Virus record (IMG/VR): IMGVR_UViG_3300042350_002797
Coordinates: 300,555 to 364,554 of that record
Length of the DNA: 64,000 nt
Reading direction: 5' to 3' (one strand)
Notes under the pieces: model-generated
Seen by the model: only the letters and a program-made list of their open reading frames with translations
What the model was told of the DNA's origin: nothing
The model's database searches: none
Shown here: one piece after another, positions 8,901 to 64,000 of the stretch
How the letters are laid out: each line of letters starts with the position of its first letter
Numbering within the stretch: the stretch's first letter is position 1
Program-made: the position numbers and the translations under genes

Positions 8901-9336
8901 TTTTATTTGAAGTTGTTAGTTCTTCAATAAAATTATCGCCAAGACAAAATGTATCGTGCATCCATAGGATACGCTGTTTGGCCTTGCTTAGAATTCTTTC
9001 ATAGATGTTCTTACTGGCAAATGGTAGTGCTCTACTATCACCTACCTGTTGGAATTGATTATTGGTTAAGAATGGAATTACAGTTCTACTGCTGATCACA
9101 ATATCAAAATCATAATCATTGGATAGTGCTGATAATGGCAAGTAATTCACACCGTCGTATTGACCAGGTGTTGCATGATCCAAATTACAGTTATTGAACA
9201 CTGTAACTTCAAAATTTAATTTGGCAAGTTCTTTACTGATGTATGTTACGGCACTTTCTGAACCGCCAAGACCTTGTTTAAAAACGGTTGAGCCGTCGTA
9301 AGGTATACCAATTATATCTATAATAGCTAATTTCAT
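5986..9336 (-). CDS. Multidomain GT4 + GT2 + GT2-like + FkbM methyltransferase
   Basis: GGSE...PETFGISTLE (GT-B); LIDDASTD...LDGDD (GT-A); IAIPT...VDADM...GFGCVL...SEDIDFC (GT-A); YDIGA...IKMDVQGAELDVLKG (FkbM). Confidence 0.85.
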   Translation of the reverse strand: MKLAIIDIIGIPYDGSTVFKQGLGGSESAVTYISKELAKLNFEVTVFNNCNLDHATPGQYDGVNYLPLSALSNDYDFDIVISSRTVIPFLTNNQFQQVGDSRALPFASKNIYERILSKAKQRILWMHDTFCLGDNFIEELTTSNKITTIFTLSDWHLTYVLNCHHGRRRNFEVLKNKTFITRNGAHLHKQEVDIKAKDPNRFVYNASVTKGMIPLVKDIWPRVKQQLPEAKLTVIGGYYRFTVNGQPDQQELDWRQMANDPANAQLDIEFTGIIPQSEIADRLAAANFMIYPAAFPETFGISTLESICYNTPVITCRFGALEEVALEGSCYLIDYAIEPNSLFTDINREAQIKKFVEQTVQAYHNTYLHQQKQYYCNVVKPIAGWDTVALQWKQFFYKTCGLYLSLEEYRQVSKINRRVHKVYNRRYHNVVELENYKSNTEQQINIVSTFYNNRNYIERCIESVICQDYDNYHHYLIDDASTDDTVDVAYRFIDSLPQHIQNKITLIVNEQNLGAVRNQVELFRTLEQNSIIMILDGDDSLINDNTILSYYNTLYSDNLEFTYGSCWSMVDNIPLISQPYPEEVKQSKTYRQHHFNWILPYTHLRTFKKYLIDNCDDSLFQNENNEWYRAGGDGAVFYALIEQADPNKVACLQDIVYNYNDTNPLNDYKVNAEEQNRTARNIISKPTMLKKKILIAIPTARNIEPETFKSIYDQIIPEDYQTTFQYFYGYRVDQVRNLIADWAVKGYDYLWAVDADMAFAPDTLQKLLSHNKDVVTGIYRQRKPEQILEVYENNNTGGVNHIPYYKIQNRGVVEIAACGFGCVLVKSEVFRSIGYPQFMYYPALDHSHTISEDIDFCRKAKDKGFTIWADTSIVCSHIGQTHFNITPEVAPIPKITDYTDRLRELGSQRLIPYQHVEYLKTLSIEPKVVYDIGACVLHWTNEARRIWPDSEYVVFEAMPECEFIYKEQNLQYHIGVLSDTTGRQVDFYQNTYHPGGNSYYRENIEVNAEAHEYFNDSHRRQYTTVTLDAVVNLKKLPKPDLIKMDVQGAELDVLKGAQETLSNCNHVILECQSVEYNKGAPLKDEVITYMESLGFENLGQFCTNGPDGDYYFRKKQ

Positions 9337-22610: not shown

Positions 22611-25600
22611 TCAGGTTACTCCGCCGGCGTCAATACTGGATATTCCACCATAGTTACTGTCAGGTTGACCACCATCTAAGTTACCGAATGTGCCGCCGGT
22701 GCCGCCACCGGTTCCTGAACTACCAGTATAACCCCTGAGTCCTTGATCACCCTGACTACCTGTAAACCCTGTTCCTTGACTACCAGTAAAGCCGGCAGAT
22801 CCTGCAAAGCCAACTAACCCTCTGCTACCTACAAATCCTATGCTACCAGTAAATCCAGTACTACCTACAAATCCCGAACTACCAGTAAATCCAATTATAC
22901 CTTGTGGACCTGTTAATCCAGTTGCTCCTGACAGGTCGGTTATAAAATTATAAGAAGTGCCTGTCCATAGATATAATCTACTATTTTCTAAATTATCAGG
23001 ATTAGCAGTTTCAATAATAGCAAACTGTCCTGCAATTATTCCTGCAGGACTTGTATCAGAAGTTAACTCTGACACACTAGAATAGATTTTAGCAATTGTA
23101 AATCCTAAACCAGTATCACCTTTACTACCTGTAAAACCAATGTCGCCTTGACTGCCTGTATAGCCATTAGTTCCAGCACTGCCTGTAAAACCAATGTCGC
23201 CTTGACTGCCTGTAAAACCAATGTCGCCTTGACTACCGGTATAGCCATTAGTTCCAGCACTGCCTGTAAAACCAATGTCGCCTTGACTGCCTGTATAGCC
23301 AATATCTCCTTGACTACCGGTAAAACCAATGTCGCCTTGACTGCCTGTATAGCCAATATCTCCTTGACTACCGGTAAAACCAGAACTTCCAGTATATCCT
23401 TGACTACCATCTACTCCTATTATACCGTCAGTTCCTCGACTACCAGTGTAACCAATCACTGTACTAGCCGAACCAGTGTATCCTGTTATACCTTGACTAC
23501 CTGCGAAACCATTACTACCAGTAAAACCAAGATCACCTTTACTGCCTGAGAATCCAACTACGCCTCGACTACCAGTAAATCCTGTTCCTTGACTACCAGT
23601 AAAACCAATTGATCCAGTAAAACCGATGTCACCTCTACTACCGACAAATCCGGTTATGCCCTGACTACCAGTAAATCCTGCACCTTGACTACCAGTAAAT
23701 CCTAAACTACCTGTATAGCCGATCACTGTACTTGCAGATCCAGTAAAACCAATACTACCTGTGTACCCTTGATCGCCTTGACTACCAGTAAAACCAATTT
23801 CCCCTTGTAGACCTTGATCACCTTTACTACCAGTAAATCCTCTACTGCCAGAATATCCTCTTAAACCTTGATTTCCTGTAAGACCTTGACTGCCTGTAAA
23901 TCCTCTACTACCTGTAAAACCTTGATCACCTCTGTCGCCTTGATTTCCAGTGTCGCCTTTACTACCAGTAAATCCTCTGAATCCTTGTTCACCTTGAGCT
24001 CCTGTTATACCTTGACTTCCTGTATATCCTTTTCTGTCATCAATTTTGATAATACCAATCATTCCACTATGAAAAACACATTGATATACAATCTGAGTGG
24101 GTGCATCATACGGAACTCTATAACTGATTAACGTAGATGTGGAATGATTACCTGATGTTGTGTTATTATTAGTCATTCCTGGAACAGTGTCGGTGTTTCC
24201 AGAACTTAATCTAAATGCTAAAGGGTGAGAACTAGTAATATTTTGTAAGTTAAAATATACTAAGTCTCCTTTGAAAACAGTGATAGTAGGATAATTTTCA
24301 TTATAACCATCTATAGTATAAACAAAAGCGCCACCAGGATTATTAAATTTAAATAATTGTCCTCCTTGGCTACCAGTAAAACCTAGTGCAGCATATTCTC
24401 CTGGAATACCTTGACTACCTGTAAACCCAGTACTTCCTGTGAATCCAGATTGACCTCTACTACCAACATACCCAGTGTCACCTTGATCACCTTTACTGCC
24501 AGTAAATCCACGACTACCAGTAAAACCTAGGTCTCCTCGACTACCAACAAATCCAGTGTCACCTTGATCACCTTTACTGCCAGTAAATCCACGACTACCA
24601 GTAAAACCTAGGTCTCCTCGACTACCAACAAATCCAGTGTCTCCTCGACTACCAGTAAAGCCAGTTTGTCCTGTACTACCAGTATAACCAATAATACCTT
24701 GACTACCGGTGTAACCAATAGCTGCTGCTTCTCCTGGAATACCTTGACTACCTGTAAAACCTCTCGAACCGGTTACTCCAATACTGCCTGTAAATCCAGT
24801 ATTACCTTGTATTCCTTGACTACCTACAAATCCTCTGCTACCAGTATATCCTAAGTTTCCTTGCGGTCCTTGTATACCTTGTATACCTTGACTGCCTGTG
24901 AAGCCTCTTAATCCTTGTTCTCCTGTGTCGCCTTTACTACCTGTGTAACCAAAATCTCCTTGGCTACCAGTAAAACCTAGTGCAGCATATTCTCCTGGAA
25001 TACCTTGACTACCTGTAAACCCAGTTACACCTTGACTACCTGTAAACCCAGTACTACCAACAAAACCAGTATCTCCTTGACTACCTGTATATCCAATACT
25101 ACCAGTGAAACCAGTACTTCCTGTGAATCCAGCATCGCCGCGACTACCAGTAAAACCTAGTGCAGCATATTCTCCAGGAATACCTTGACTACCTGTAAAT
25201 CCTCTTGATCCTGTATATCCCAGACTTCCAGTAAAGCCAGTATCTCCTTGAATGCCTTGATCACCTTGATCGCCTTGACTGCCAGTGTAACCAAGAGGCC
25301 CTATTTCCCCTTGATCACCTTGGTTACCTCGACTGCCTGTAAAACCAATAGATCCAGTATATCCGATATCTCCTTGTAAGCCTTGACTACCTGCAAAACC
25401 TAATATTCCTTGACTACCTGTAAATCCTTGACTACCAGTAAATCCAATGCTACCAGTGAAACCAGTACTTCCACTAGATCCCTGACTACCAGTAAATCCT
25501 AAAGCAGCATACTCACCTGGGATACCTTGACTGCCTGTGAAACCAATATCTCCTTGTGAGCCGGTAAATCCAATACTACCGGTGTAGCCTTGTAGCCCAT

Positions 25601-28600
25601 CCGTACCTTGACTGCCTGTGAAACCAATATCTCCTTGTGAGCCGGTAAATCCAATACTACCGGTGTAGCCTTGTAGCCCATCCGTACCTCTACTACCAGT
25701 ATAACCAATATCTCCTTGTGAGCCGGTAAATCCAATACTACCGGTGTAACCAATAGCTGCTGCTTCTCCTGGAATACCTTGACTACCAGTGTAACCAATA
25801 CTACCTACAAATCCTCTACTACCAGTGTATCCTTGATCACCTTGTGGCCCTAGGTCGCCTTGTGGTCCTGGGTCTCCTTGTAAGCCTTGACTACCAGTAA
25901 AACCAATATCACCTTGATCGCCTTGATCACCTTTAAAACCAACACTACCTGTAAATCCTAAACTACCAGTATATCCAATAGGACCTTCTAAACCTTCTTG
26001 ACCTCTTAGTCCTTGACTGCCAGTAAAACCTGTTAGTCCTCTACTTCCTGAGAAACCTGTTATACCTTGACTGCCGATAAATCCTGAACTACCTGTGTAA
26101 CCAATACTACCTGTGTATCCTTGATCGCCTTGACTACCAACAAATCCAGTGTCTCCTCGACTGCCTGTAAAACCAATACTACCAGTATAACCTCTGTCCC
26201 CTGTGCTACCAGTGAAACCTACTGAACCTCTACTACCGGTAAATCCTACACCTTGACTACCAGTGAAACCAATCGATCCAGTGAATCCTTGGTCACCTTG
26301 ACTACCAGTAAATCCTTCTCCTTTACTTCCTGTAAAACCAACACTGCCTGTATAACCAAAGTCGCCTTGACTACCAGTGAAGCCAGTTGCGCCTTGACTG
26401 CCAGTGAAACCTCTACTACCAGTATAACCTGTGTTGCCTTGACTGCCTGTATAACCAAAGTCTCCTTGTGAACCGACAAATCCCTTACTGCCTGTATAAC
26501 CAAAGTCTCCTTGACTACCAGTGAAGCCGATGAATCCTTGTGATCCAGTGTAACCAACACTGCCGGTGAATCCTAAATCGCCGCGACTACCTGTGTAACC
26601 GAAGTCTCCTTGACTACCTGTATAACCAACACTGCCGGTGAATCCTAAATCACCACGACTACCTGTATAACCAAAATTACCTTGACTACCTGTAAATCCA
26701 ACACTACCTGTAAATCCAACACCACGACTGCCAGTGTATCCGATGTCGCCTTGTGAACCAACAAAACCTTGACTACCTGTGTATCCAACACCTGCACTGC
26801 CAGTAAAGCCTAAGTCTCCTTTGCTGCCGCTAAATCCACGACTACCAGTAAATCCTATATTCCCCTGTGATCCGGTATATCCAACAATGCCTTGACTACC
26901 TGTAAATCCAACACTACCAGTAAAGCCTAGGTCTCCTTTGCTACCTGTATATCCTATAGTACCTTGACTACCAGTAAATCCAATACTACCAGTGAATCCA
27001 ATTGATCCGGTATAACCGATATCGCCTTGACTACCTGTATAACCAATAATTCCCTGACTGCCGGTGTAACCAGTACTACCTGTGAATCCTACACCTTGAC
27101 TACCTGTATAACCAATAGGACCTTGAATTACACCTACGTCAGTCCAAGTTGTTCCTGTCCAAATGTACAAATGACCAGTATTAGAAACAATATAGGAATC
27201 ACCTATGTTTCCGGTATAGTCTGAGGGTAATTGATTAGCGTTATTAACAGATCCTATTATTATAACACTAGTACCATCTGAACCTTTGCTACCAGTATAT
27301 CCTTGTTCTCCTTGACTACCAGTATAGCCAATATCTCCACGACTTCCTACAAAACCAGTACTACCTGTATAACCAGTACTACCTGTGTAACCAATATCTC
27401 CTTTACTACCTACAAAACCTATGTCACCTTGACTGCCTGTATAACCTAACGATCCGGTATATCCAAAGTCTCCTTTACTACCTGTTAATCCAATTATACC
27501 TTGACTACCTACATAACCAATACTACCTGTGTAGCCAATATCACCTTGGCTACCTACAAAACCTATGTCACCTTGACTACCTACATAACCTACACTTCCT
27601 GTGTAGCCAATATCACCTTGACTACCTACAAAACCTATGTCACCTTGACTACCTACAAACCCCACCGACCCGGTGTAACCTGTATCGCCTTGTGATCCTG
27701 TATAACCAAAGTCACCTTGACTACCGGTGTATCCTATACTGCCTGTGTAGCCAATATCTCCTTGTGATCCTGTATATCCAAAGTCGCCTTGACTGCCAGT
27801 AAATCCTCTACTTCCTGCAAAGCCAATACCTTGACTACCTGTATATCCAACACCTTGACTACCTGTGAATCCTTGGCTACCTGTATAACCAATATCGCCT
27901 TGACTACCTGTATAACCAAAATCTCCCTGACTGCCGGTAAAGCCTCGACTGCCGGTAAAGCCTTGAACCCCTTGACTACCTACAAATCCAGTATCACCTT
28001 GTGATCCAACAAATCCTTGACTGCCAGTATATCCTGTATCTCCTAAGCTACCGGTATATCCTATACCTTGACTTCCTGTAAAACCAATTGTTCCTTGACT
28101 ACCAGTGAATCCAACTGATCCAGTAAAGCCAATTGATCCAGTAAATCCTAAATCGCCTTTACTACCAGTAAATCCTATAAATCCTCTACTACCAGTAAAT
28201 CCTAAATCGCCTTTACTACCAGTATAACCTTCTGATCCAGTGTATCCTATACCTTCTGATCCAGTATAACCTATATTTCCCTGACTACCTGTATAACCGT
28301 CAGGACCTTGAATTTGTCCTACATTCGTCCAAGTCGATCCTGTCCAAACATATAAGTCTCCAGAAATTAAGTACGAGTCTCCGGCATTACCGCTGGCTGG
28401 AAGATTTGAAATAGAATTTAATGATCCTAAAATAGTAACTGAAGTTCCTGGATCTCCCTTGCTACCCGTGTATCCAACACCTGCACTACCAGTAAATCCT
28501 TTACTTCCTGTGTAACCAAGACTACCTACAAATCCTACACTACCAGTAAATCCTCTACTCCCAGTGTATCCTTTTCCTACTTCTACAATTTCCTGTTTAA

Positions 28601-31600
28601 TTTCTAGTGTAAATGATCTTGATTCACTTTGAGGTACTATGTCTGTAACTGTTACAGTAAATGTACTAGTAGAAAAAACTTCAGTTGGAATTCCAGTTAT
28701 TGATCCTGTAGAAGAACTGAAAAATAAACCAGGAGGTAATGTGCTTGGACTAATAGAATAAGTTAAAGTTCCTTCCCCTCCAGTAGCAGTGACAGGTATT
28801 AATTCTGCTGCTTCTAGTCTAGTAAGAATTACAGGATTAACATTAGATATAGTTGTGATAGGTGTAGGCGGATCTTCATTTACTACTAAAGTAAACGTAT
28901 CAAATTCTGTTTGACTCAAACTATCTGTTACACTTATTGTAAACGTTGTCAAGCCTAAAACACTAGTAGGTGTTCCAGAAATAGATCCCGTACTAGTGTT
29001 AAATGTTAATCCTGTAGGAAGACTAGGACTGATAGAATAAGTTAAAGTTCCTGATCCTTCTGTTGCACTGATTGGAACAAAAGAAGTTATTTGACTATAT
29101 TGAGTAAAAATGTTAGTAGCAGAGTTTACAGTCAATAAAATCTGTGGTGGTAAAACTTCTATTGAAAATGTTACACTATTAGTTTGTCCTGCTTGATCAG
29201 ATACAGTAAAAGTATAGGTAGTTAAATTATTAGCACCACTTGGTGTTCCTGAGAATGTTCCTGTAATAGTATTAAATGTTAAACCACTTGGTAAATTAGG
29301 ACTTATACTAAAAGTTCTTGTACCTGCACCTCCTGACACAGCCACCGGAGTATAGGTTGCAACAACAACATCCTGAGTTAATGTAACAGTTGAAACATTG
29401 GGTGTTAAGACTAAAGCAGGAGGAGAAGTAACTGTTAAACTAAAAGTGTTAGAAGCAGTAGAATTATCAGTATCAGTTACAGTTACGGTAAATGTTGTAG
29501 TGTTTATTATACTAGTAGGTGTTCCACTAATTTGTCCCGTGCTTGTGTTAAAACTTAATCCACTTGGTAAACTTGGACTGATACTGTATGAGTAAGTTCC
29601 TGTTCCTCCAGATCCGGTTACTGGAATAAATGCAGTGGTTAAAATGTTCTGAACAATTGATCTAGATGAAATGTTTTGTACAGCTACTAGAACAGGATTA
29701 ACAACTGTTAAACTAAATGTTTTACTACTAGTTTGACCTAATGAATCCGTTGCAGTAATTGTAAAATTACCAGAACTAGTAGTCGAAGGTGTACCTCCTA
29801 TTCTACCATTACTAGAACTAAATGTTATACCATTAGGAAGACTAGGACTAATATTAAAAGTAATTGATCCATAACCACCAGCAGCACTTACAGGTGCAAC
29901 CGCAGTTGCAGCTTGTAACTTAGTAAATGTAACATTGGCATTTTCTAAAGTCGTAGTAATAGCCGGGGGTAATTCAATTGTTATTATAAACGTATTGCTT
30001 GCAGTTTGGCTGGCTGAATCGCTGACAGTAACCGTGTACGTAGTTTGTACAGATGTAACAGTAGGTGTTCCAGTTATTTGTCCAGTTGATGTAATAAAAC
30101 TTAAACCATTTGGCAAACTTGGACTAATGCTGTAAGACAAAGTTCCACTGCCGCCAGATCCTACAACCGGATTAAAAGGAGTAATAGCAACATTTCTTAT
30201 AAATGTTGATGCATTTGTTGACACAGTTGCATTTAAAGCAGGGGGCGCATTAATAGTTAATGTAAATGTTTTGCTACTAGTTTGATTTACTGTGTCTGAA
30301 ACAGTTATAGTAAAAGTTGTTTGCGATATCGCAGATGTAGGAGTTCCGCTTATTTGTCCACTAGCAGCATTTAAAGTTAAGCCGCTTGGTAAACTTGGAC
30401 TAATGCTATAGGTTAATGCTCCTACGCCACCACTGCCTGATACAGGCGTAAATGCAGCCATCACTGCACCTTGAGTAATAGTTCTTGTAGGAACATTTAC
30501 AGTTGTAGTGATTGGAGGATTAATTACAGATAAAGTAAACGTCTTGCTACTAGTTTGATTTAAAGTATCAGTGGCTGTAACTGTATAGGTTGTAGATCCA
30601 CTTAGAGCAGTAGGTGTTCCAGTAATTTGTCCAGTCGATGTATTAAAATTTAAACCAACTGGAAGTGTAGGACTAATACCGAATGTTAGATTACTATAAC
30701 CCCCACTTGCTGTTACAGGAATAAATGGAGTAATATTAGTGTTAATCACTAGAGAACTAGTAGCAACAGATTGAGTCGTTATAATTGCACTAGGCGCATT
30801 TACTAATAACTGAAAAGTCTTACTGCTAGTTTGATTAGCCTGATCACTTACTATAATAGTAAATATTGTCTGCGATAACGTTACTGTCGAAGTTCCGCTA
30901 ATCTGTCCTGTACCAGAATTGATAGTCAACCCAGAAGGTAAACTTGGGCTTACAGCGTATGCTAAAGTTCCAAATCCTCCACTAGCTGTGACAGGAGTAA
31001 ATGGAGTAACTGCTACATTTTGAGTTGCTGTAAAATTCGAAACTGATACAGTAGTCGTTATAGGTGCAGCATTTACTGTTAGAGTAAATGTACTACTACT
31101 AGTTTGACCTACTGAATCTGTTATAGTAACTGTATAAGTCGTTGTTCCGCTTACACCTGTTGGTGTTCCGGTTATTTGTCCAGTGCTTGTGTTAAAACTC
31201 AATCCAGATGGTAAGTTTGGACTAATATTGTATGATAACGGAGAAACACCACCTGACACTGTGACAGGTGTAAATGGTGTAACGATTGCACCTTGTGTAA
31301 GTGTTGGAATATTAGTGGAAGTCGCAGGAACTATTGCAGGTGGTGTATTCACCGTTAAACTAAAAGTCTTACTGCTTGTTTGATCTGCGGTGTCTGTTAC
31401 TGTAACTGTAAAGGTAGTTTGAGTTAAGGTAACAGATGGTGTTCCTGATATAGATCCATTTGTAGTATTAAATTGTAGACCACTTGGTAAAGTTGGACTA
31501 ATGCTATAGGTCAATGCTCCTACGCCGCCACTGCCTGTCACTGGAGTGAAAGTAGCTGCTGCAACAAACTGTGTAAGGATTCTTGATGCAATTGCTTGAG

Positions 31601-32183
31601 TAGAAGATAAAATAGCAAGTCCAGATTCCACAGTTAGATTAAATGTTGTACTACCAACCTGACCTGCACTGTCAGTAAATGTTACTACATAAGTTGTATT
31701 TGCAGTAGCGACTGTTGGAGTTCCGGATAAGGTTAGTTCTACACTATTAAATAAATTACTTGTACCATCAGTATTTTGAATAGTGATTACAGTTTTATTA
31801 GTAGCAGTTAAAGTTATCCCTGCCGGTAATGCTGGACTAACTGTAAAATTTAAAATCGGAGTTGTGCCAGGAGAACTTACACTTGTTCCACCTGTTGGTA
31901 TAATAGCAGCTCCTCCAACTGCCTTTACTACAGTTGTAGTAAATGAATTATTTCTAACTACTACATTATTATTTGATAAAGTATTGACAGTTATACTTGG
32001 TCTAGCTACAGGAGGTTTGATCCCCGTAGGTTGTGGCCAAACTAATTTTCCTGCACTTAGTCCTGTGCCAGCGGCAGCTCTAAATATTGCTCCGTTTTGA
32101 TTTATAAAGTAATCGCCTACAGCGTATGAAAAATTTGTACTAGCTGGAGTGCTTAATGGATAAGGATAATAAAAAATTGCCAT
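22611..32183 (-). CDS. Giant fibre (3190 aa): 12 putative-Ig repeats + long collagen-like G-X-Y region with inserted globular domains
   Basis: 12 LPxGL.F...TG.I.GTP repeats, then a very long run of G[FY]TGS units; YQCVFHSGM cupredoxin-like insert. Confidence 0.9.
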   Translation of the reverse strand: MAIFYYPYPLSTPASTNFSYAVGDYFINQNGAIFRAAAGTGLSAGKLVWPQPTGIKPPVARPSITVNTLSNNNVVVRNNSFTTTVVKAVGGAAIIPTGGTSVSSPGTTPILNFTVSPALPAGITLTATNKTVITIQNTDGTSNLFNSVELTLSGTPTVATANTTYVVTFTDSAGQVGSTTFNLTVESGLAILSSTQAIASRILTQFVAAATFTPVTGSGGVGALTYSISPTLPSGLQFNTTNGSISGTPSVTLTQTTFTVTVTDTADQTSSKTFSLTVNTPPAIVPATSTNIPTLTQGAIVTPFTPVTVSGGVSPLSYNISPNLPSGLSFNTSTGQITGTPTGVSGTTTYTVTITDSVGQTSSSTFTLTVNAAPITTTVSVSNFTATQNVAVTPFTPVTASGGFGTLAYAVSPSLPSGLTINSGTGQISGTSTVTLSQTIFTIIVSDQANQTSSKTFQLLVNAPSAIITTQSVATSSLVINTNITPFIPVTASGGYSNLTFGISPTLPVGLNFNTSTGQITGTPTALSGSTTYTVTATDTLNQTSSKTFTLSVINPPITTTVNVPTRTITQGAVMAAFTPVSGSGGVGALTYSISPSLPSGLTLNAASGQISGTPTSAISQTTFTITVSDTVNQTSSKTFTLTINAPPALNATVSTNASTFIRNVAITPFNPVVGSGGSGTLSYSISPSLPNGLSFITSTGQITGTPTVTSVQTTYTVTVSDSASQTASNTFIITIELPPAITTTLENANVTFTKLQAATAVAPVSAAGGYGSITFNISPSLPNGITFSSSNGRIGGTPSTTSSGNFTITATDSLGQTSSKTFSLTVVNPVLVAVQNISSRSIVQNILTTAFIPVTGSGGTGTYSYSISPSLPSGLSFNTSTGQISGTPTSIINTTTFTVTVTDTDNSTASNTFSLTVTSPPALVLTPNVSTVTLTQDVVVATYTPVAVSGGAGTRTFSISPNLPSGLTFNTITGTFSGTPSGANNLTTYTFTVSDQAGQTNSVTFSIEVLPPQILLTVNSATNIFTQYSQITSFVPISATEGSGTLTYSISPSLPTGLTFNTSTGSISGTPTSVLGLTTFTISVTDSLSQTEFDTFTLVVNEDPPTPITTISNVNPVILTRLEAAELIPVTATGGEGTLTYSISPSTLPPGLFFSSSTGSITGIPTEVFSTSTFTVTVTDIVPQSESRSFTLEIKQEIVEVGKGYTGSRGFTGSVGFVGSLGYTGSKGFTGSAGVGYTGSKGDPGTSVTILGSLNSISNLPASGNAGDSYLISGDLYVWTGSTWTNVGQIQGPDGYTGSQGNIGYTGSEGIGYTGSEGYTGSKGDLGFTGSRGFIGFTGSKGDLGFTGSIGFTGSVGFTGSQGTIGFTGSQGIGYTGSLGDTGYTGSQGFVGSQGDTGFVGSQGVQGFTGSRGFTGSQGDFGYTGSQGDIGYTGSQGFTGSQGVGYTGSQGIGFAGSRGFTGSQGDFGYTGSQGDIGYTGSIGYTGSQGDFGYTGSQGDTGYTGSVGFVGSQGDIGFVGSQGDIGYTGSVGYVGSQGDIGFVGSQGDIGYTGSIGYVGSQGIIGLTGSKGDFGYTGSLGYTGSQGDIGFVGSKGDIGYTGSTGYTGSTGFVGSRGDIGYTGSQGEQGYTGSKGSDGTSVIIIGSVNNANQLPSDYTGNIGDSYIVSNTGHLYIWTGTTWTDVGVIQGPIGYTGSQGVGFTGSTGYTGSQGIIGYTGSQGDIGYTGSIGFTGSIGFTGSQGTIGYTGSKGDLGFTGSVGFTGSQGIVGYTGSQGNIGFTGSRGFSGSKGDLGFTGSAGVGYTGSQGFVGSQGDIGYTGSRGVGFTGSVGFTGSQGNFGYTGSRGDLGFTGSVGYTGSQGDFGYTGSRGDLGFTGSVGYTGSQGFIGFTGSQGDFGYTGSKGFVGSQGDFGYTGSQGNTGYTGSRGFTGSQGATGFTGSQGDFGYTGSVGFTGSKGEGFTGSQGDQGFTGSIGFTGSQGVGFTGSRGSVGFTGSTGDRGYTGSIGFTGSRGDTGFVGSQGDQGYTGSIGYTGSSGFIGSQGITGFSGSRGLTGFTGSQGLRGQEGLEGPIGYTGSLGFTGSVGFKGDQGDQGDIGFTGSQGLQGDPGPQGDLGPQGDQGYTGSRGFVGSIGYTGSQGIPGEAAAIGYTGSIGFTGSQGDIGYTGSRGTDGLQGYTGSIGFTGSQGDIGFTGSQGTDGLQGYTGSIGFTGSQGDIGFTGSQGIPGEYAALGFTGSQGSSGSTGFTGSIGFTGSQGFTGSQGILGFAGSQGLQGDIGYTGSIGFTGSRGNQGDQGEIGPLGYTGSQGDQGDQGIQGDTGFTGSLGYTGSRGFTGSQGIPGEYAALGFTGSRGDAGFTGSTGFTGSIGYTGSQGDTGFVGSTGFTGSQGVTGFTGSQGIPGEYAALGFTGSQGDFGYTGSKGDTGEQGLRGFTGSQGIQGIQGPQGNLGYTGSRGFVGSQGIQGNTGFTGSIGVTGSRGFTGSQGIPGEAAAIGYTGSQGIIGYTGSTGQTGFTGSRGDTGFVGSRGDLGFTGSRGFTGSKGDQGDTGFVGSRGDLGFTGSRGFTGSKGDQGDTGYVGSRGQSGFTGSTGFTGSQGIPGEYAALGFTGSQGGQLFKFNNPGGAFVYTIDGYNENYPTITVFKGDLVYFNLQNITSSHPLAFRLSSGNTDTVPGMTNNNTTSGNHSTSTLISYRVPYDAPTQIVYQCVFHSGMIGIIKIDDRKGYTGSQGITGAQGEQGFRGFTGSKGDTGNQGDRGDQGFTGSRGFTGSQGLTGNQGLRGYSGSRGFTGSKGDQGLQGEIGFTGSQGDQGYTGSIGFTGSASTVIGYTGSLGFTGSQGAGFTGSQGITGFVGSRGDIGFTGSIGFTGSQGTGFTGSRGVVGFSGSKGDLGFTGSNGFAGSQGITGYTGSASTVIGYTGSRGTDGIIGVDGSQGYTGSSGFTGSQGDIGYTGSQGDIGFTGSQGDIGYTGSQGDIGFTGSAGTNGYTGSQGDIGFTGSQGDIGFTGSAGTNGYTGSQGDIGFTGSKGDTGLGFTIAKIYSSVSELTSDTSPAGIIAGQFAIIETANPDNLENSRLYLWTGTSYNFITDLSGATGLTGPQGIIGFTGSSGFVGSTGFTGSIGFVGSRGLVGFAGSAGFTGSQGTGFTGSQGDQGLRGYTGSSGTGGGTGGTFGNLDGGQPDSNYGGISSIDAGGVT
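22720..28575 (-). repeat. Collagen-like G[FY]TGSxG coding repeats
   Basis: Degenerate 9/18/27-nt periodic repeats (e.g. ccttgactaccagtaaa). Confidence 0.9.
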
Positions 32184-49641: not shown

Positions 49642-49717
49642 GCACTGGTAGCTCAACGGTTAGAGCCGGAGTCTCTAAAGCTCAAGGTTATGGGTTCGAA
49701 TCCCATTCGGTGCACCA
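49642..49717 (+). tRNA. Amber suppressor tRNA, anticodon CTA
   Basis: 76-nt cloverleaf: GCACTGG/TCGGTGC acceptor, GCTC/GAGC D-stem, anticodon loop CT-CTA-AA (CTA at 49675-77 = positions 34-36), ATGGG-TTCGAAT-CCCAT T-arm, A73, encoded CCA. Confidence 0.85.
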
Positions 49718-58668: not shown

Positions 58669-58850
58669 TATGTTAAAAATAGCAATAGGTATGGGCAGCA
58701 TTGTTATGATGATTGCAACACTAATTACTGCTTTAGTAATAACCCGAATGTGCCTTAGTGCTGCTCATCACTTCCTGCTGAAATAGGTTGACATTTGGGC
58801 ACAGAGGTGCTATTATATACACACTTAGACAACAACAGAAGGAGAGCGAA

Positions 58851-59294
58851 ATGGGTACAAGATCATTGACGTTTGTTTACAGCGAAAACGATAAGCCTAT
58901 TGTCAACTTGTATAGACAGTATGATGGCTATCCCACAGGCCATGGTGCTGAGCTTGCAGAGTTCCTCAGTGAGTTTGCTGCTATTACTAATGGCATTGCT
59001 GTGGGTGAGACACGTCGTACTGCCAATGGCATGGGCTGCTTGGCTGCTCAATTAGTAGCACACTTCAAAAACAGCGTGGGCGGGTTTTACATCCACAGCG
59101 TTGACTCCAAGGAGTGTGGACAGGACTATGAGTACCACGTGTATCAGGGTGGTGCTAATGGCGAGCTGTGGGTACGTGTTAAGGATCGTGGCTGCAATAT
59201 GTTCGGCCTGACACTGAGCGACATGGACAAAAGTATTTTTGATGGTCCTGTTAGCCATTTTGTAACATTCTGTAGCGAAAAAACAACAGCATAA
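58851..59294 (+). CDS. Early hypothetical protein
   Basis: AAGGAG; MGTRS...YRQYDGYP.GHG...NGMGCLAAQ. Confidence 0.8.
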   Translation: MGTRSLTFVYSENDKPIVNLYRQYDGYPTGHGAELAEFLSEFAAITNGIAVGETRRTANGMGCLAAQLVAHFKNSVGGFYIHSVDSKECGQDYEYHVYQGGANGELWVRVKDRGCNMFGLTLSDMDKSIFDGPVSHFVTFCSEKTTA

Positions 59295-59358
59295 ATTGGT
59301 TGACAAAGTGTAGGGCTGGTGTTATACTAGCTCTACACTAACAAAACAGGAGCAGACA

Positions 59359-59619
59359 ATGTCTAGATTTGCAATTGAACAGTTTGTAGAGCGTGAGAAC
59401 AAGTTTGGTGCCATCTTTGGTTCCAAGCCCTTGAGCTTACTGAACAAGGCGGATCGTCAGCGTATTGCAGACAAGATTGATGCGGCACTGAGCCCAGAGA
59501 ACTTGACCTGCGATGGTGAACTGCCTAGAGCAGAGGTGCAGAAGCGTTACAACTTCCTCACTAAGGCTGCAAAAGAACTGAAGAGTATTGACCCTGCTGT
59601 TGAAATGTACGGATTCTAA
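59359..59619 (+). CDS. Early hypothetical protein
   Basis: Cassette; LSPENLTCDGE. Confidence 0.8.
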   Translation: MSRFAIEQFVERENKFGAIFGSKPLSLLNKADRQRIADKIDAALSPENLTCDGELPRAEVQKRYNFLTKAAKELKSIDPAVEMYGF

Positions 59620-59629
59620 GGAGACTGAT

Positions 59630-60196
59630 ATGCCTAACTGGTGCTCAAATAGTGTTGTGCTCAAGCACAAAGACCCTACATTCGTTGCTCGTGCTCGTGA
59701 GGCATTTAACGAAGGTACCCTACTAAATGAATTCATTCCTGTCCCTAAAGACCTCAAGGAGACTGTCAGTGGGTTCATGGGTGATACAGAAGAGCAGAAG
59801 CAACTAGAGATTCAGACTGCATACAATATCAAGAACTATGGATATGGCAACTGGTATGACTTCTGCGTAAACGAGTGGGGTACCAAATGGGATGTAGGTG
59901 CCGATGGTCAGCCGGCACAGGACATTGAAGGCGGCCTAATGTTGAACTTTGATTCAGCGTGGGCACCACCGATCAGAGCCTATGAGAAGATGGTAAGTAT
60001 GGGCTTCGAAGTAGAAGCATTATATTACGAATCTGGCATGGGTTTTGTAGGCGAATGGATCGATGGCGAAGACTATTGCTATCAGATCGAAGGCAACAGT
60101 GAGTGGGTGCGTGAGAACATACCTGAGCACTTAGACGAAGCCTTCGCTATCAGTGAAGGTATGGAACAATGGGAAGAGGAAAATGAAGAAAGTTAA
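59630..60196 (+). CDS. DUF1281/YubB-like ferredoxin-fold protein
   Basis: MPNWCSN...WYDFCVNEWGTKWD...FDSAWAPP...YYESGMGFVG. Confidence 0.7.
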   Translation: MPNWCSNSVVLKHKDPTFVARAREAFNEGTLLNEFIPVPKDLKETVSGFMGDTEEQKQLEIQTAYNIKNYGYGNWYDFCVNEWGTKWDVGADGQPAQDIEGGLMLNFDSAWAPPIRAYEKMVSMGFEVEALYYESGMGFVGEWIDGEDYCYQIEGNSEWVRENIPEHLDEAFAISEGMEQWEEENEES

Positions 60197-60280
60197 ACCA
60201 GTAGTACCAAAGATACGTCCTAAGGAACCTAATTGGGACTTTTCAGGAATCGAAGCAGTGATTAGACTATGGGCAAAGGG

Positions 60281-60550
60281 ATGAGCAAACTACAACTACT
60301 TCACAGACAGTGGGTAGTGTTTGATGCCCACAATGAGAACCATCGTAGATATTATGCAGACTTTTGCAAATATGCTACTTGGGGACGCTGCCCAGTCCGT
60401 TTCATAATGGACGATGACAGTAACGATTTAATAACAATGATTCAACGAAAGTTAGTAGAATATTATGTTACGGAGGAGTTTCCTGTAGTATCAAAGCCTA
60501 AAATCAAAACGGATAGATATATGGTTGACTCAGCACCAAAAACCGCTTGA
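60281..60550 (+). CDS. Hypothetical protein
   Basis: FDAHNENHR...WGRCPVRF. Confidence 0.65.
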   Translation: MSKLQLLHRQWVVFDAHNENHRRYYADFCKYATWGRCPVRFIMDDDSNDLITMIQRKLVEYYVTEEFPVVSKPKIKTDRYMVDSAPKTA

Positions 60551-60634
60551 CAAAGTATTCGAACTAGCGTATAATTCGAATTGTAGTAGCAATATTACTT
60601 TGTATTTTTATTAACACACACATGGAGATTTTGA

Positions 60635-60985
60635 ATGACTAACCAAACTTTTACTGTAGCTGGTACTTCTAAACACAAAGGCGAATTCAAAGTTCGTTTC
60701 GCTAATGATTTGATGCGTACCAAGAATCTTACCAAGTCAGGACACACTGACATTACACTAGTTGAGCTGCCACAAGCTATGTTGAAGCTGGATGCTATCA
60801 AGTACATCGCAACTCTGGATGAGTTTGATAATGTTGGTGCAAAGACTGCGATCATGGACTACTTGGATCGCAAGGACGAAGCACCTAAAGCTAAGGGTCC
60901 GGCTGTCAAAGCATCAGGCCCCGCTGCTAAGAAGGTTACCAAGGCTAAGGCAGCAGTGACCGCCGACGAAGACGCACCATTTTAA
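60635..60985 (+). CDS. Hypothetical protein with K/A-rich tail
   Basis: Promoter at 60547; GGAG; VAGTS...KVRFAND. Confidence 0.75.
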   Translation: MTNQTFTVAGTSKHKGEFKVRFANDLMRTKNLTKSGHTDITLVELPQAMLKLDAIKYIATLDEFDNVGAKTAIMDYLDRKDEAPKAKGPAVKASGPAAKKVTKAKAAVTADEDAPF

Positions 60986-61024
60986 TCGCGTGTGAGGCCT
61001 CCGTATCGTATAAATAAAATCACT

Positions 61025-61201
61025 ATGCGATACGGAGTTTCTTTTTCAAATGACTACTTTGAGGGTTCAGTGGTAATACGTGACTTTCAAAGTGAACCCA
61101 AGGGCCGCGTGTTGGCCATCATACCTAGAGATAATAGACACGAAGCAGAACAAGAAGCACAGAGGATCTGCGACTTACTTAATAAATCCTTAGCACAATG
61201 A
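61025..61201 (+). CDS. Hypothetical protein
   Basis: TATAAATA upstream; AQRICDLLN. Confidence 0.55.
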   Translation: MRYGVSFSNDYFEGSVVIRDFQSEPKGRVLAIIPRDNRHEAEQEAQRICDLLNKSLAQ

Positions 61202-61383
61202 TTTTCGAACTATATGAGGTCTGGACCGAAGACTCTCTCGGACATCAAGAACTAGTAGATACCACCAGCAGTATCGTCGAAGCTAGAATTATTGCAGAAC
61301 AAGCACTTGACGATGGTGCAGAATATGTTATAATATATAGAGAAACAGAAGACGGCGAATTAGAAGTAGTAGAAGAAATGTAA
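61198..61383 (+). CDS. Acidic hypothetical protein
   Basis: Coupled ORF. Confidence 0.6.
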   Translation: MIFELYEVWTEDSLGHQELVDTTSSIVEARIIAEQALDDGAEYVIIYRETEDGELEVVEEM

Positions 61384-61384
61384 T

Positions 61385-61469
61385 GCCCGGGTGGTGGAAT
61401 GGTAGACACAAGGGACTTAAAATCCCTCGCCCATAAGGCGTGCCGGTTCGAGTCCGGCTCCGGGTACCA
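61385..61469 (+). tRNA. tRNA-Leu (TAA)
   Basis: Cloverleaf with long variable arm, loop CT-TAA-AA, CCA end. Confidence 0.92.
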
Positions 61470-61473
61470 ATAT

Positions 61474-61550
61474 CTGACCATAGCTCAATCGGATAGAGCA
61501 ACAGCCTTCTAAGCTGTAGGTTGGGGGTTCGATTCCCTCTGGTCAGGCCA
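61474..61550 (+). tRNA. tRNA-Arg (TCT)
   Basis: CTGACCA/TGGTCAG acceptor, loop CT-TCT-AA, CCA end. Confidence 0.92.
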
Positions 61551-61554
61551 AGTA

Positions 61555-61632
<78 letters not shown>

Positions 61633-61737
61633 CTCATCTAGGTTAGTAAGCACTTACTTACACACTAAAATTTTGGTTGACTTTTTTGCGCAAACCTGTA
61701 TAATACAAACACTTAAACAAAACAGCAGGAGCGTAAA

Positions 61738-62037
61738 ATGCGTATTAAAAAAGCAACTAAAGCAGACGTAGCAACTATTGTACAAATTATGCAAGCAGAC
61801 CTTGCAAAATATGTAAAACTAACTAAAACAGCGTATGCAGACAAAATTGCAGACAGCACTTACATAGCAGAATTGCACTACGACGATATTGTACACAATT
61901 ACAATGCACTAGTGCAATTTATGCAAGACAAAGACACTGTAAAATTGTGCGACACAATTATGCGACAGGACACTGCACCACGGGAGTACTTTTACAAAAC
62001 TATACATTTTTGCACAGACAATTATATGTACTATTAA
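61738..62037 (+). CDS. Early protein in the TC-free island
   Basis: Cassette promoter + AGGAG; QDTAPRE. Confidence 0.8.
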   Translation: MRIKKATKADVATIVQIMQADLAKYVKLTKTAYADKIADSTYIAELHYDDIVHNYNALVQFMQDKDTVKLCDTIMRQDTAPREYFYKTIHFCTDNYMYY

Positions 62038-62109
62038 TTTTTTGGTTGACAAAGTGTGTGTGCTATGCTATAGTACACACACTTAAACAGTAATTGTAAG
62101 GAGCGTAAA

Positions 62110-62292
62110 ATGCAAACAGTTATTAAACAGCAACTTTTTAATAAATTAGCAGAAGTACAAGACCTGCTGAAACAAGCTACCTGCGACAGCGAAAGTTACG
62201 CACAAAGTTTACAGGATAACATTGGGTGGGCAGCTGAGCTAGATATTGCGCTGCGTACACTTACAGACAATGTAGATTATTACGTGGATTAA
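62110..62292 (+). CDS. Early protein in the TC-free island
   Basis: Cassette promoter + AAGGAG. Confidence 0.75.
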   Translation: MQTVIKQQLFNKLAEVQDLLKQATCDSESYAQSLQDNIGWAAELDIALRTLTDNVDYYVD

Positions 62293-62359
62293 TTTTGGTT
62301 GACAATGTAGTGTATGTGTGCTATAATGTACACATACACTAACAAAACAGGAGCACACA

Positions 62360-62524
62360 ATGACCGAAGCTAAAATTGAGCGGCTAGAGCGTACACTGTG
62401 GGAGCTGGAGCAGCTGGCTAGTGAGCTGTTTGACATGGGCTACATTACACAGGGCAATGCGATTTATGGCGTGGTAGAAACTGTAGACGCTGAGCTTGCG
62501 GACATTGTAGAAGGGAGAGAGTAA
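62360..62524 (+). CDS. Early acidic protein in the TC-free island (not in ORF track)
   Basis: AGGAG + ATG; MTEAKIERLERTLWELEQL... Confidence 0.7.
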   Translation: MTEAKIERLERTLWELEQLASELFDMGYITQGNAIYGVVETVDAELADIVEGRE

Positions 62525-62757
62525 TGTTATTGAAACAACACGTTAACGAACTAGTAAACATGGATGCTGCTGGCCTTAGCAAAATTACAAGGCATACAGG
62601 CTACAAGGATGCTAATTTCGCAACCTGCGAGTTTGTGGGCATTACTAACGGCGGTGAGTTTGCGTACAGGGCCAGCTACTACGAGGATGGCAGAGAACAG
62701 TTTACAAAATTGTATGTGTGGCGAGACACTGCTGGGAACTTTGTAGCAGACTACTAA
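62524..62757 (+). CDS. Early hypothetical protein
   Basis: Coupled; FVGITNGGEF.Y. Confidence 0.75.
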   Translation: MLLKQHVNELVNMDAAGLSKITRHTGYKDANFATCEFVGITNGGEFAYRASYYEDGREQFTKLYVWRDTAGNFVADY

Positions 62758-62822
62758 AAACGGTTGACATTTTGGACAGTTAGTGTATAATAGCTGCATA
62801 CGTTAACAAAACAGGAGCTAAA

Positions 62823-63065
62823 ATGTTTGCACAAGCTAAAAACAACACTGCTTACGCTAAATTGTCCTTTTGCAAAAAGCTAAAACTGTTTAAAATGATC
62901 GTTGCTTTTAACGTAACACAGCGTAACGCTAAGGGCAAATTGTTGTTTCCTGTACAACAAAAGTGCAACTATGTTAGTGGTCACTTTGCTTTAGAGGAGC
63001 TTGCTAAACAGTTAACAGTCGCGGAGCAGCACCTGCGTACAAATAAAATTGTAATTGCAGAATAA
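62823..63065 (+). CDS. Basic early protein
   Basis: Cassette; contains no Asp. Confidence 0.7.
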   Translation: MFAQAKNNTAYAKLSFCKKLKLFKMIVAFNVTQRNAKGKLLFPVQQKCNYVSGHFALEELAKQLTVAEQHLRTNKIVIAE

Positions 63066-63132
63066 AATTGGTTGACAAGCTAGTGTATGTGTGCTATAAT
63101 GTACACATACACTAACAAAACAGGAGCGAAAA

Positions 63133-63384
63133 ATGTTTAAATTAGATGAGCGTAGTGAAGTGTACTTCCAGGGCAAGACCTACACCACATGGCACGGTAG
63201 TCCATTTGATCGTGGTAGCGCAGACAGCTACTATGGTCGTGGTGCTAAGGCACACTGGTATCCCGAGGGTACTGGACGTGGTGAAGCAATTACTGAAGAG
63301 CGTATGAGCTTGACAGAGATTGAAGCATACTACGCAGGCTATGATCACAATGAGCGGTTTGGTGACAAGAAGAATTGGTATTAA
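63133..63384 (+). CDS. Early hypothetical protein
   Basis: Cassette; HGSPFDRGSADSYYGR. Confidence 0.8.
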   Translation: MFKLDERSEVYFQGKTYTTWHGSPFDRGSADSYYGRGAKAHWYPEGTGRGEAITEERMSLTEIEAYYAGYDHNERFGDKKNWY

Positions 63385-63387
63385 GAT

Positions 63388-63789
63388 TATGGTGAGGAAG
63401 CAAGGTTGGGGTTTGGTCACTGTATAGTGGCTGTGCGCTGAAACAACCCGTAATGCGAATATCCTTGTGGTAAGCAGAGAGTTGGCGTGGCGACCAACCA
63501 CCATACAAGTTCCGGTTACTACTTTCCTGAAAGTAGCGGGTGGCACCGAGATTGGCCCGGTGAGCTAGGACACCGTTAGAGCAATGCAGAGCTGGGCCCT
63601 AGATATGCGGACACAACCGCTAGCGAATATGCTCAAACAAATGTGGACAGGGCAACAACTCCAGCATAGGGGCGATCCGTGGAAAGACGTGGCCTAAGCA
63701 ATTATACTAAAACACATTTCGAGCGGTGTCCCGGTATCGGCCAGCCCGCCCCAAAGTAGCTGTCTAGGGTAGTGTGTTTTGATATAATT
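63388..63789 (+). ncRNA. Candidate cluster of structured ncRNAs
   Basis: ~400-nt GC-richer block with no + strand gene and nested stems (tatggtg/caccata, caagg/ccttg, ggtcact/agtggct, gttgg/ccaac, ctacttt/aaagtag, caccg/cggtg, aattata..aaaacaca/tgtgtttt..tataatt). Confidence 0.55.
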
Positions 63790-63851
63790 CGGTTGACAAC
63801 TCAGACTCTTGGTGCTATAATATACACATACTGAAACAACAGGAGCGTGAT

Positions 63852-64000
63852 ATGGGATACAAGGTACTGAACACTGTGGACAATATGCGTGACAACTATG
63901 GTCCACGCCCTGGGCTAGAAGGTCCGTACAATTTCAACGGTAGGGTTCTGTACTACGATCCAAAGGAAGGCCAGTACTATGACCCACGCACAGACTTCTA
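63852..64000 (+). CDS. Early hypothetical protein, 3'-truncated
   Basis: Cassette promoter + AGGAG; GLEGPY...GRVLYYDPKEG.YYDP.TDF. Confidence 0.75.
   Translation, partial: MGYKVLNTVDNMRDNYGPRPGLEGPYNFNGRVLYYDPKEGQYYDPRTDF

Follow-up and report, generated by a model that had tools for sequence, protein, structure and literature searches.

The interval 63388–63789 is a string of three independent RNA modules, here termed elements (a), (b) and (c), whose families live inside the tRNA arrays of related giant phages. The window analysed, 64,000 nt in length, forms the end of an IMG/VR virus record of 364,554 bp that is rated complete, and the phage sequence recurs across many lake-water metagenomes. 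Element (b) is one compact RNA of ~190 nt held by several pseudoknots and carrying an invariant 17-nt strand, element (a) is a conserved folded RNA module of the + strand, and element (c), by inference, is probably a processing or insulating hairpin rather than an independently functional RNA. A first-pass annotation had described the interval as a block of consecutive structured non-coding elements, and all of the stems it named are present at the positions it gave. Its proposal of structured phage RNAs is supported by covariation in (a), in (b) and in the stem of the (c)-type class, which had been set beforehand as one of two tests. One correction is that the elements are no isolated peculiarity of this locus but members of families found inside the tRNA arrays of related phages.

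Taken by itself, the window sequence does not raise this observation above chance, whereas with its relatives the observation is decisively above chance. Against dinucleotide shuffles, the folding energy of the whole block gave z = +1.45, that of (a) z = −0.73 and that of (b) z = −0.50. Element (c) folds at −25 kcal/mol (z = −1.52), with its relatives at z = −4.6 to −5.6. None of the single-sequence folding energies (block, (a), (b) or (c)) is significant, so it is comparison that carries the case.

Setting and coding status of the block

The block fills a gene-free gap of ~400 bases with an 83-aa gene on one side and a sigma70-type promoter on the other. Its GC content is 0.52, compared with 0.41 across the preceding 1.4 kb, and is close to that of the tRNA cluster at 61385–61632. 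The 83-aa gene (63133–63384, + strand) is an ORF of unknown function that likely is driven by a sigma70-type promoter, TTGACA-17-TATAAT, at 63072–63100 (+ strand, 12/12 consensus match). Read-through from this promoter into the RNA block is inferred, and no terminator-like sites were found between it and 63793. The 83-aa protein has ~400 relatives in IMG/VR and is among three small upstream proteins without a Pfam or PHROG match. Its stop codon is followed by a (b)-type RNA in four lineages (cited examples are L007/L092, L008/L105 and L089). The block is bounded on its other side by the next sigma70-type promoter (63793–63821, + strand, 12/12 consensus), which serves the gene starting at 63852. 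In L007/L092 the corresponding promoter lies directly 3’ of (b), without an intervening (c).

Stop codons occur in all three + frames of (a), (b) and (c). No ORF led by a Shine–Dalgarno (SD) sequence was found in the block, and short ORFs are present, for example at 63584–63697 (37 aa). The first-pass annotation had noted both the lack of an SD-led ORF and the position downstream of the 63072 promoter, and both hold; its placement of the block in an early region remains an inference of that reader only. As the window contains a tRNA with anticodon CTA at 49642, a reading of TAG as a sense codon was tried. Reading TAG as Gln yielded only implausible frames overlapping known features and no credible gene, and recoding of stop codons in this genome is disfavoured by its long table-11 ORFs. 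ARAGORN called four tRNAs in the 64-kb window and none in 63388–63789, and the block lies ~1.7 kb downstream of a three-tRNA cluster, outside the main tRNA array of the phage. A protein of the capsid region gave no match to cultured phages.

Architecture and conservation of element (b)

The first-pass annotation had placed several hairpins at 63506–63699. These are corrected here to a single multi-pseudoknot RNA of 192 nt at 63510–63701 on the + strand, which matches model R1 with 147 bits (E = 2e-44). Its 5’-terminal UUCC (63510–63513) pairs with GGAA (63681–63684) in the apical loop of the 3’ hairpin, forming a long-range pseudoknot. The P1 hairpin follows at 63519–63536 with a stem of seven pairs (63519–63525/63530–63536), three of which are changed on both sides, and is 99.3% paired. 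By analogy with distant members, in which GCAG/CUGC and CCCUU/AAGGG form an H-type pseudoknot, the CC of the P1 loop (63526–63527) likely pairs with GG at 63514–63515. The 2-bp version in the window is inferred, and would represent a short form of that pseudoknot.

The central pseudoknot (63558–63603) consists of a stem, 63558–63562/63571–63575, whose loop at 63565–63569 pairs with 63598–63602 and which encloses a short variable hairpin at 63580–63593. As MAFFT shifts the window row by one column in this region, the window pairs of the central pseudoknot were read directly from the sequence. Helices 2, 3 and 4 of (b) show the exchanges CG/AU, UA/GC and AU/CG/UA. The variable middle domain (63607–63644) contains two small hairpins, GCGG/CCGC at 63607–63610/63617–63620 and AGC/GCU near 63622–63633, which in the window lineage stand in for a 9-bp middle helix present in most members. 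Full compensation of this family helix, UGGACACUA/UAGUGUUCG, is seen in L118, L089/L116 and L104b, and the helix is largely broken in the window copy as aligned. L105 and L129 carry CCGG/CCGG in place of the window GCGG/CCGC, so that the small middle hairpin covaries. The window copy, L105 and L129 together form a divergent branch of the family (147 bits vs about 200).

The hallmark of the superfamily is the invariant strand, GGACAGGGCAACAACUCC in the window (63645–63662), where 102 distinct copies agree at 16 of the first 17 positions. It is followed by the 3’ hairpin (63664–63701), which ends in a tail of AA. Within this hairpin, helix Pa (63664–63670/63693–63699) is separated by an internal loop, GG 63671–63672 against UGG 63690–63692, from helix Pb (63673–63677/63686–63689), which has a bulged A at 63675 and closes a loop at 63678–63685. 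The pairs of Pa and Pb vary over the 102 copies, with four to six pair types per position.

The covariation set for (b) comprised 21 distinct sequences and seven helices, one of them pseudoknotted. In this set, 93.8% of cells are paired and 15 pairs carry changes on both sides, compared with 31–41% and 3–7, respectively, for slid partners, and none of 500 shuffles reached the observed values. Frequent G·U pairs fix the + strand as the RNA strand. The helices came from a scan for compatibility and covariation and were then tested, with RNAalifold alone giving only a partial structure. The covariation counts derive from related sequences, and the structures were partly defined by hand.

More distant copies, reached through model R1, have whole helices swapped for compensated versions. 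A 17-nt string from the middle element retrieved 31 true copies, and with a looser pattern the number of viral stretches rose to more than 118. The superfamily comprises more than 100 distinct copies in contigs of uncultured freshwater phages. Its invariant strand, GGACAGGGNAACAACUC, has 16 of 17 positions unchanged over the 102 distinct copies and is kept in the most distant copies. In the 3’ third, GGACAGGGNAACAACUC is followed by a stem of 6–7 bp and then by a fixed 2 × 3 internal loop (GG / U-R-G), beyond which lies a second stem, closed by an invariant C-G pair and capped by a G-rich apical loop. Neither the closing pairs nor the 2 × 3 internal loop vary in the 102 copies. The 5’ tetramer and the 3’ loop covary in eight combinations (UUCC/GGAA, CCUC/GAGG, UCCC/GGGA, CCCC/GGGG, ACCC/GGGU, AUCC/GGAU, CCAUCC/GGAUGG and CCAC/GUGG), and their mean matching run of 3.79 compares with 3.08 ± 0.11 (maximum 3.42) when the loops are reassigned among members. 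In distant members there are H-type pseudoknots at the 5’ end and also ahead of the invariant strand, and a strand further downstream is the pairing partner of the central stem-loop in all groups of the superfamily. In total, about 200 nt of superfamily RNA accommodate three or four pseudoknots at the least. The invariant strand was no more complementary to the 28 tRNAs of the phage than shuffled motifs were.

Searches outside the uncultured viruses returned no confirmed relatives. The first-pass annotation could assign no Rfam family, and this holds, even in a search of 421 nt: Rfam 15 returned only tRNAs and noise at E ≤ 10 on 4 kb, on 421 nt and on L108, and at E ≤ 1 on eight other array loci. 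Neither the region nor a family-typical (b) had a BLAST match among 50,697 records of cultured phages. A motif scan of 596 Gb of GTDB prokaryote genomes gave six matches, about the number estimated by chance from the pattern and the size of the collection, and none was confirmed by R1. Set against the more than 118 viral stretches, these six unconfirmed, chance-level matches mark the (b) superfamily as virus-specific.

Six metatranscriptome runs contain 5–10% of the sampled words of 61300–64000, and four of these, from four lake and river studies, were aligned over 2,701 nt. Contigs of 150 nt identical to 63522–63673 were present in two runs, and the two others contained (b) from relatives, with loose contig ends matching the L105-type and main-type variants. 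In the same four runs (a) and (c) were almost uncovered. The check for transcription that had accompanied the earlier description thus found (b) sequence in four libraries. This evidence consists of contigs, which report presence only, without ends, strand or level, and carry-over of DNA is possible.

Element (a), the long-stem hairpins and the tRNA arrays

Element (a) is a five-helix RNA of 118 nt at 63388–63505 on the + strand, established from a comparative alignment. As claimed in the first-pass annotation, it is closed by TATGGTG/CACCATA, the 7-bp P1 (63388–63394/63499–63505), with a GTTGG/CCAAC arm abutting the closing strand. The arm (63481–63498) is carried by hairpin P5 (63481–63487/63491–63498), which has a 3-nt loop and a bulged A and meets the closing strand of P1 without a spacer. 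Between these lie P2 (63400–63405/63463–63468), the P3 hairpin (63415–63420/63427–63432) and P4 (63434, 63436–63438/63455–63458), the last of which closes a conserved 16-nt loop. The topology is therefore a closing stem, a long arm bearing two hairpins and the conserved 16-nt loop, and a hairpin abutting the closing stem. The alignment contained eight distinct homologs or lineages, with one further copy added by model R2. Over the eight distinct homologs, 99.6% of cells are paired compared with 28–53% when the partners are slid, and five pairs are changed on both sides. P1 and P5 are both backed by one- and two-sided changes, and the G·U pairs occur on the + strand. In some lineages (a) contains an optional inserted hairpin with a GNRA-type cap. 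Among near relatives, L007 and L008 lack both (a) and (c) and keep only (b), directly after the stop codon.

The tRNA-like geometry that had been attributed to (a) holds as topology only, with detectors of tRNA and tmRNA rejecting it. ARAGORN makes no tRNA call in (a), and the Rfam tRNA model (RF00005) matches only 61385–61629. Element (a) has in common with a tRNA its 7-bp acceptor-like stem stacked directly on an arm, but the P5 loop is not a T loop. With the tRNA-like domain of tmRNA it shares a 7-bp closing stem, a joiner, a long helix to the body, a second joiner and a hairpin abutting the 3’ strand. Unlike tmRNA, it has no T-loop consensus, G3·U70, single-stranded CCA or conserved tag frame, and its body is ~70 nt. 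The homologs differ by 2-nt indels inside the would-be tag frame. Neither ARAGORN nor Rfam calls a tmRNA, and the first three pairs of (a) are U-A, A-U and U-A.

Element (c) occupies 63700–63789 on the + strand. Its description as a long AT-rich stem around a GC-rich core held, with arms at 63700–63718/63771–63789 that contain one C·A mismatch and one U·G pair and enclose a GC-rich, three-way core of 52 nt (63719–63770). The core is shared with two lineages only, L094 and L108, in which the order is tRNA-(c)-(a)-(b)-tRNA, and a wider search for it added no lineage to the three already known. The stem belongs to a class of 20 distinct hairpins with near-perfect stems of 17–19 bp, arms like CCAUAUUGAAGCACAUU / AGUGUGUUUCAAUAUGG and unrelated cores of 27–104 nt. 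Several arms are fully compensated (GUGUA/UAUAC). Counted over 19 positions per stem, the class comprises 334 Watson–Crick pairs, 38 G·U pairs on the sense strand, three A·C and five others. Given the asymmetry of 38 G·U to three A·C, it is the transcript, not the DNA, that is under selection to pair. Fourteen of the 20 hairpins start at a tRNA CCA, and the stems usually sequester the CCA of the upstream tRNA together with the first bases of the next module. The window (c) follows (b) rather than a tRNA and its stem is weakened and degenerate; the adjacency of (b) and a following hairpin also occurs in L091, L104 and L107. Every relative of (a) has a (c)-type hairpin immediately 5’, itself starting at a tRNA CCA. 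The order of the modules varies, being a-b-c in the window phage and c-a-b in L094 and L108.

In relatives, the (b) copies are situated inside arrays of 15–21 tRNA genes, on the tRNA strand. A same-strand tRNA lies within 3 kb of 100 of the 107 distinct copies and three or more do so in 93 (median 10), whereas no copy has an opposite-strand tRNA within that distance (0/107). In 36 of the 107 the invariant strand starts 134–160 nt after a tRNA end, and the RNA therefore begins right behind the tRNA. In 23 of the 107 a tRNA starts 53–67 nt after the invariant strand, within a few bases of the last hairpin. Many copies start 1–8 nt past a tRNA CCA. Others (for example L109, L090, L096, L152 and L166) have their own −35/−10 promoter a few bases before the 5’ tetramer, and in many relatives the limits of (b) coincide with tRNA ends or a promoter. 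The 5’ edge is the same whether it is marked by a tRNA end, a promoter, a stop codon or element (a), and (b) is a discrete gene of 186–220 nt. The window phage has 28 tRNAs, 24 of them in an array at 244–252 kb. Within that array are (c)-type hairpins, and the interval from its tRNA-Gly to its tRNA-Thr is taken up precisely by a (b)-like copy, very distant and the second in this phage.

Interpretation and comparison with known RNAs

The interpretation preferred here, with a probability of roughly 0.6, is that the block is a string of three phage RNA modules yielding stable RNAs that are matured together with tRNAs, with (b) and perhaps (a) acting in trans. Transcription, cleavage and activity are all inferred. 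Transcription would proceed from the 63072 promoter through the 83-aa gene into the block, which would then be cut into stable RNAs by the host enzymes that mature tRNA arrays. Cleavage at the tRNA-like stems and at downstream tRNAs would fall to RNase P and that at the (c)-type stems to a nuclease specific for double strands, RNase III for example, with a further contribution from exonucleases. No phage-encoded RNase III (PF14622, PF00636) is present, and cleavage of the RNase III type would therefore depend on the unknown host. The trans-acting role of (b), and perhaps of (a), would then be directed at the translation or tRNA apparatus, or at a host factor attacking that apparatus, with the invariant strand and the conserved internal loop forming a putative binding or active site and (c) serving as a processing or insulating hairpin. 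Several points weigh against this interpretation: no ends have been mapped, the window (c) stem is degenerate, the window (b) is without the long middle helix, the block is outside the main tRNA array of the phage, and no partner or activity is known.

Four other explanations were weighed. The (b)-type RNAs could be large self-cleaving ribozymes that cut at their own 5’ edge and thereby free the 3’ end of the upstream tRNA. Such cleavage is hypothetical. It would suit the many copies that start 1–8 nt after a tRNA CCA and a pseudoknot-rich fold with many invariant unpaired bases, as is typical of ribozymes, and the HDV-like theta ribozymes of gut phages, which free tRNA 3’ ends in this manner, provide a precedent (PMC10879173). 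However, with only one or two copies per array of 15–28 tRNAs the RNA cannot be a general processing device, there is no tRNA to free where a copy comes after a promoter, a protein stop codon or (a), the length of ~190 nt is three times that of a theta ribozyme, and no HDV, hatchet, twister, hammerhead or glmS model matches. This explanation is considered very improbable. The same low standing is given to the proposal that the (c)-type inverted repeats are sites of recombination or mobility at the DNA level (MITE- or attC-like) that shuffle RNA cassettes, with the hairpin being incidental. Conserved inverted termini of 17–19 nt around unrelated cores of 27–104 nt, the different module orders between phages (a-b-c vs c-a-b) and the variable presence of (a) and (c) among close relatives all speak for it. 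Against it, only a need for the transcript to pair would be expected to yield 38 G·U to three A·C on the tRNA-sense strand, the tRNA CCA is regularly part of the stems, and no transposase or integrase was noticed alongside, although no systematic search was made.

The remaining two explanations can be all but set aside. That the block consists of decayed tRNA genes, or of spacer with chance hairpins, would agree with single-sequence folding energies no better than shuffles, with the degenerate state of the window (c) stem and the (b) middle, and with the tRNA-like closing stack of (a). It is contradicted by compensatory changes in every helix family and by a 17-nt strand held invariant over more than 100 copies, and ARAGORN and the Rfam tRNA model detect the real tRNAs nearby and nothing in the block. 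That the block instead contains small-protein genes, or a cis-regulatory leader of the gene at 63852, has in its favour the existence of short ORFs such as 63584–63697 (37 aa) and a position upstream of a gene. In this case the objections are the stops in all + frames, family lengths that vary by 1–2 nt and by a 31-nt hairpin, a full consensus promoter between the block and the next gene, and the arrangement in relatives, where the RNAs are followed by tRNAs, not genes. A retron or UG27-type non-coding RNA array was ruled out because a reverse transcriptase is absent, RVT_1 (PF00078) giving no match in the 364-kb genome.

A bolder version of the trans-acting RNA interpretation is doubtful on present evidence. 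It would make the (b) superfamily a new class of functional RNA, of a complexity on the level of ribozymes and riboswitches, that giant phages encode beside their tRNAs. In this unlikely scenario (b) would be a trans-acting catalyst or a tRNA binder (at the elbow or CCA end) that matures, modifies or shields phage tRNAs against host defences that target tRNAs, with (a) as a tRNA-shaped partner or substrate. The suggestions in the first-pass annotation of decoys, ribozymes or tRNA mimics likewise remain functional guesses without activity data. What is new are RNA families within a known kind of system, the small stable RNAs of phage tRNA clusters, and their function is unknown. What lies between the tRNAs of a phage array is usually regarded as junk and the array as a mere list of tRNAs; in this case, the ‘junk’ consists of conserved, folded RNA genes. 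The complexity of (b) is within the range that earlier marked ribozymes, riboswitches or scaffolds of ribonucleoproteins, and the hairpins that sequester tRNA CCA ends hint at how arrays are processed, which is relevant to phage tRNAs as a counter-defence.

The closest analogue, by function and position and not by homology, is the pair of T4 RNAs rnaC (species 1, 139 nt) and rnaD (species 2, 119 nt). These lie 1–6 nt behind tRNA-Arg on the same strand in the tRNA cluster, are annotated only as ‘small, stable RNA’ and, to our knowledge, have no known function. They are similar in size to (a) and (b), and the families described here are likewise found beside same-strand tRNAs. At its end, T4 rnaC has a T arm and acceptor stem like those of a tRNA, comparable to the stem-plus-arm stack at the end of (a), and rnaD ends in an encoded CCA, whereas (a) and the window (b) do not. 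Element (b) differs from both in being pseudoknotted and far more widespread. When the T4 cluster was searched for homology, R2 gave no match and R1, with filters off, gave only noise (≤2.4 bits). A large comparative family in the rnaC/rnaD niche gives an old question defined ends, helices and a candidate active or binding site.

Theta ribozymes (PMC10879173) share with (b) a structured, pseudoknotted fold and a position within a few bases of phage tRNA 3’ ends. They are minimal HDV-like folds of about one third the size, and (b) differs in architecture and is not always behind a tRNA. HDV-type covariance models gave no match at E ≤ 10 in the 421-nt search or at E ≤ 1 at eight other loci. No Rfam match to RNase P RNA was obtained, and by eye the CR-I/CR-V strands of P4 were not recognised, with only loose resemblances to CR-III/IV-like strings. 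Similar comparison by eye with consensus strings of RNase P, T-box, SRP, group I and tmRNA gave no convincing mapping. The (c)-type hairpins resemble RNase III hairpins, such as the T7 R sites and those around rRNAs, in having near-perfect double-stranded stems between polycistronic units with selection at the RNA level. They differ in that 17–19 bp is at the low end, in that the cores are sizeable and partly conserved, and in that their cleavage is inferred.

GOLLD and ROOL are RNAs of complex fold and unknown function that are frequent in phages and prophages (PMC12286853). They are often found next to tRNA genes. Compared with (b) they are 2.5–4 times larger, and they have their own Rfam models, which gave no match here. 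A 2023 catalogue contains 8,495 unnamed candidate RNAs of 29–151 nt from IMG/VR (PMC10690425), and it is possible that fragments of the families described here are already among them.

A second (b)-like RNA and the 3' ends of its superfamily

A second, very divergent relative of the 192-nt multi-pseudoknot RNA, here termed (b), was located outside the window on the minus strand of the phage's own genome (G000:C1:244376-244563, equivalent to L121:2377-2564), scoring 18.8 bits with R1, the covariance model of the (b) family. In the main tRNA array, this RNA fills the space that separates tRNA-Gly from tRNA-Thr; it retains the invariant strand that is the hallmark of the superfamily and has a compensated 3' hairpin. 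Two (b)-type copies are likewise present in the related phage lineage L104. In 10 of 102 superfamily copies, including those of L211, L140, L142, L148, L160 and L165, the last stem is directly followed by ACCA, a terminus that resembles the acceptor end of a tRNA, and a long-stem hairpin of the (c) type comes next. The window copy of (b) ends in AA, not ACCA.

Long-stem hairpins and further sequences among the tRNAs

Long-stem hairpins with the variant arm CCATATAGAAACACATT... are present in the main tRNA array at L121:9449-9539 and L121:7265-7335, and the (c)-type class is therefore also represented in the phage's own array. At least three other recurrent sequences, beginning TTGTAGCTTGTAAGCAC..., GCAAGTGCTATAGATGA... 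and ATTGTGTTATTATGGAAAATTCC..., lie downstream of (b) in differing arrays. The arrays with recurrent downstream flanks are those of L082, L098, L103, L106 and L129; of L084, L086 and L109; and of L087, L102 and L111. This recurrence suggests that additional unrecognised RNA modules lie among the tRNAs.

Genes and promoters around the structured block

The block is preceded by a gene for an 83-aa protein (63133-63384, plus strand), which has approximately 400 relatives in IMG/VR, one relative in Roseobacter phage CRP-901 (46% identity) and no family in Pfam or PHROG. In four lineages, the stop codon of this gene directly precedes a (b)-type RNA. On the plus strand, the interval 58788-63821 contains ten sigma70-type promoters that match the consensus almost perfectly (11-12 of 12 positions), and a short ORF follows each of them; several share the leader form ACATAC...AACAAAACAGGAGC. 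The 10-mer CTGAAACAAC is shared by the leader, at 63829-63838, and by the first structured module, (a), whose conserved loop carries it at 63438-63447.

Suppressor-type tRNAs and large ORFs

A plus-strand tRNA with the anticodon CTA (amber suppressor type; labelled 'Pyl' by ARAGORN) is located at 49642-49717. The long table-11 ORFs of the window give no sign of recoding. The array of the relative L087 contains suppressor-type tRNAs with both CTA and TTA (ochre) anticodons (L087:5204-5278 and L087:10349-10422). Large ORFs elsewhere in the window encode 3,190 aa (22611-32183, minus strand), 1,597 aa (its neighbour, 12940-17733) and 1,116 aa (5986-9336).
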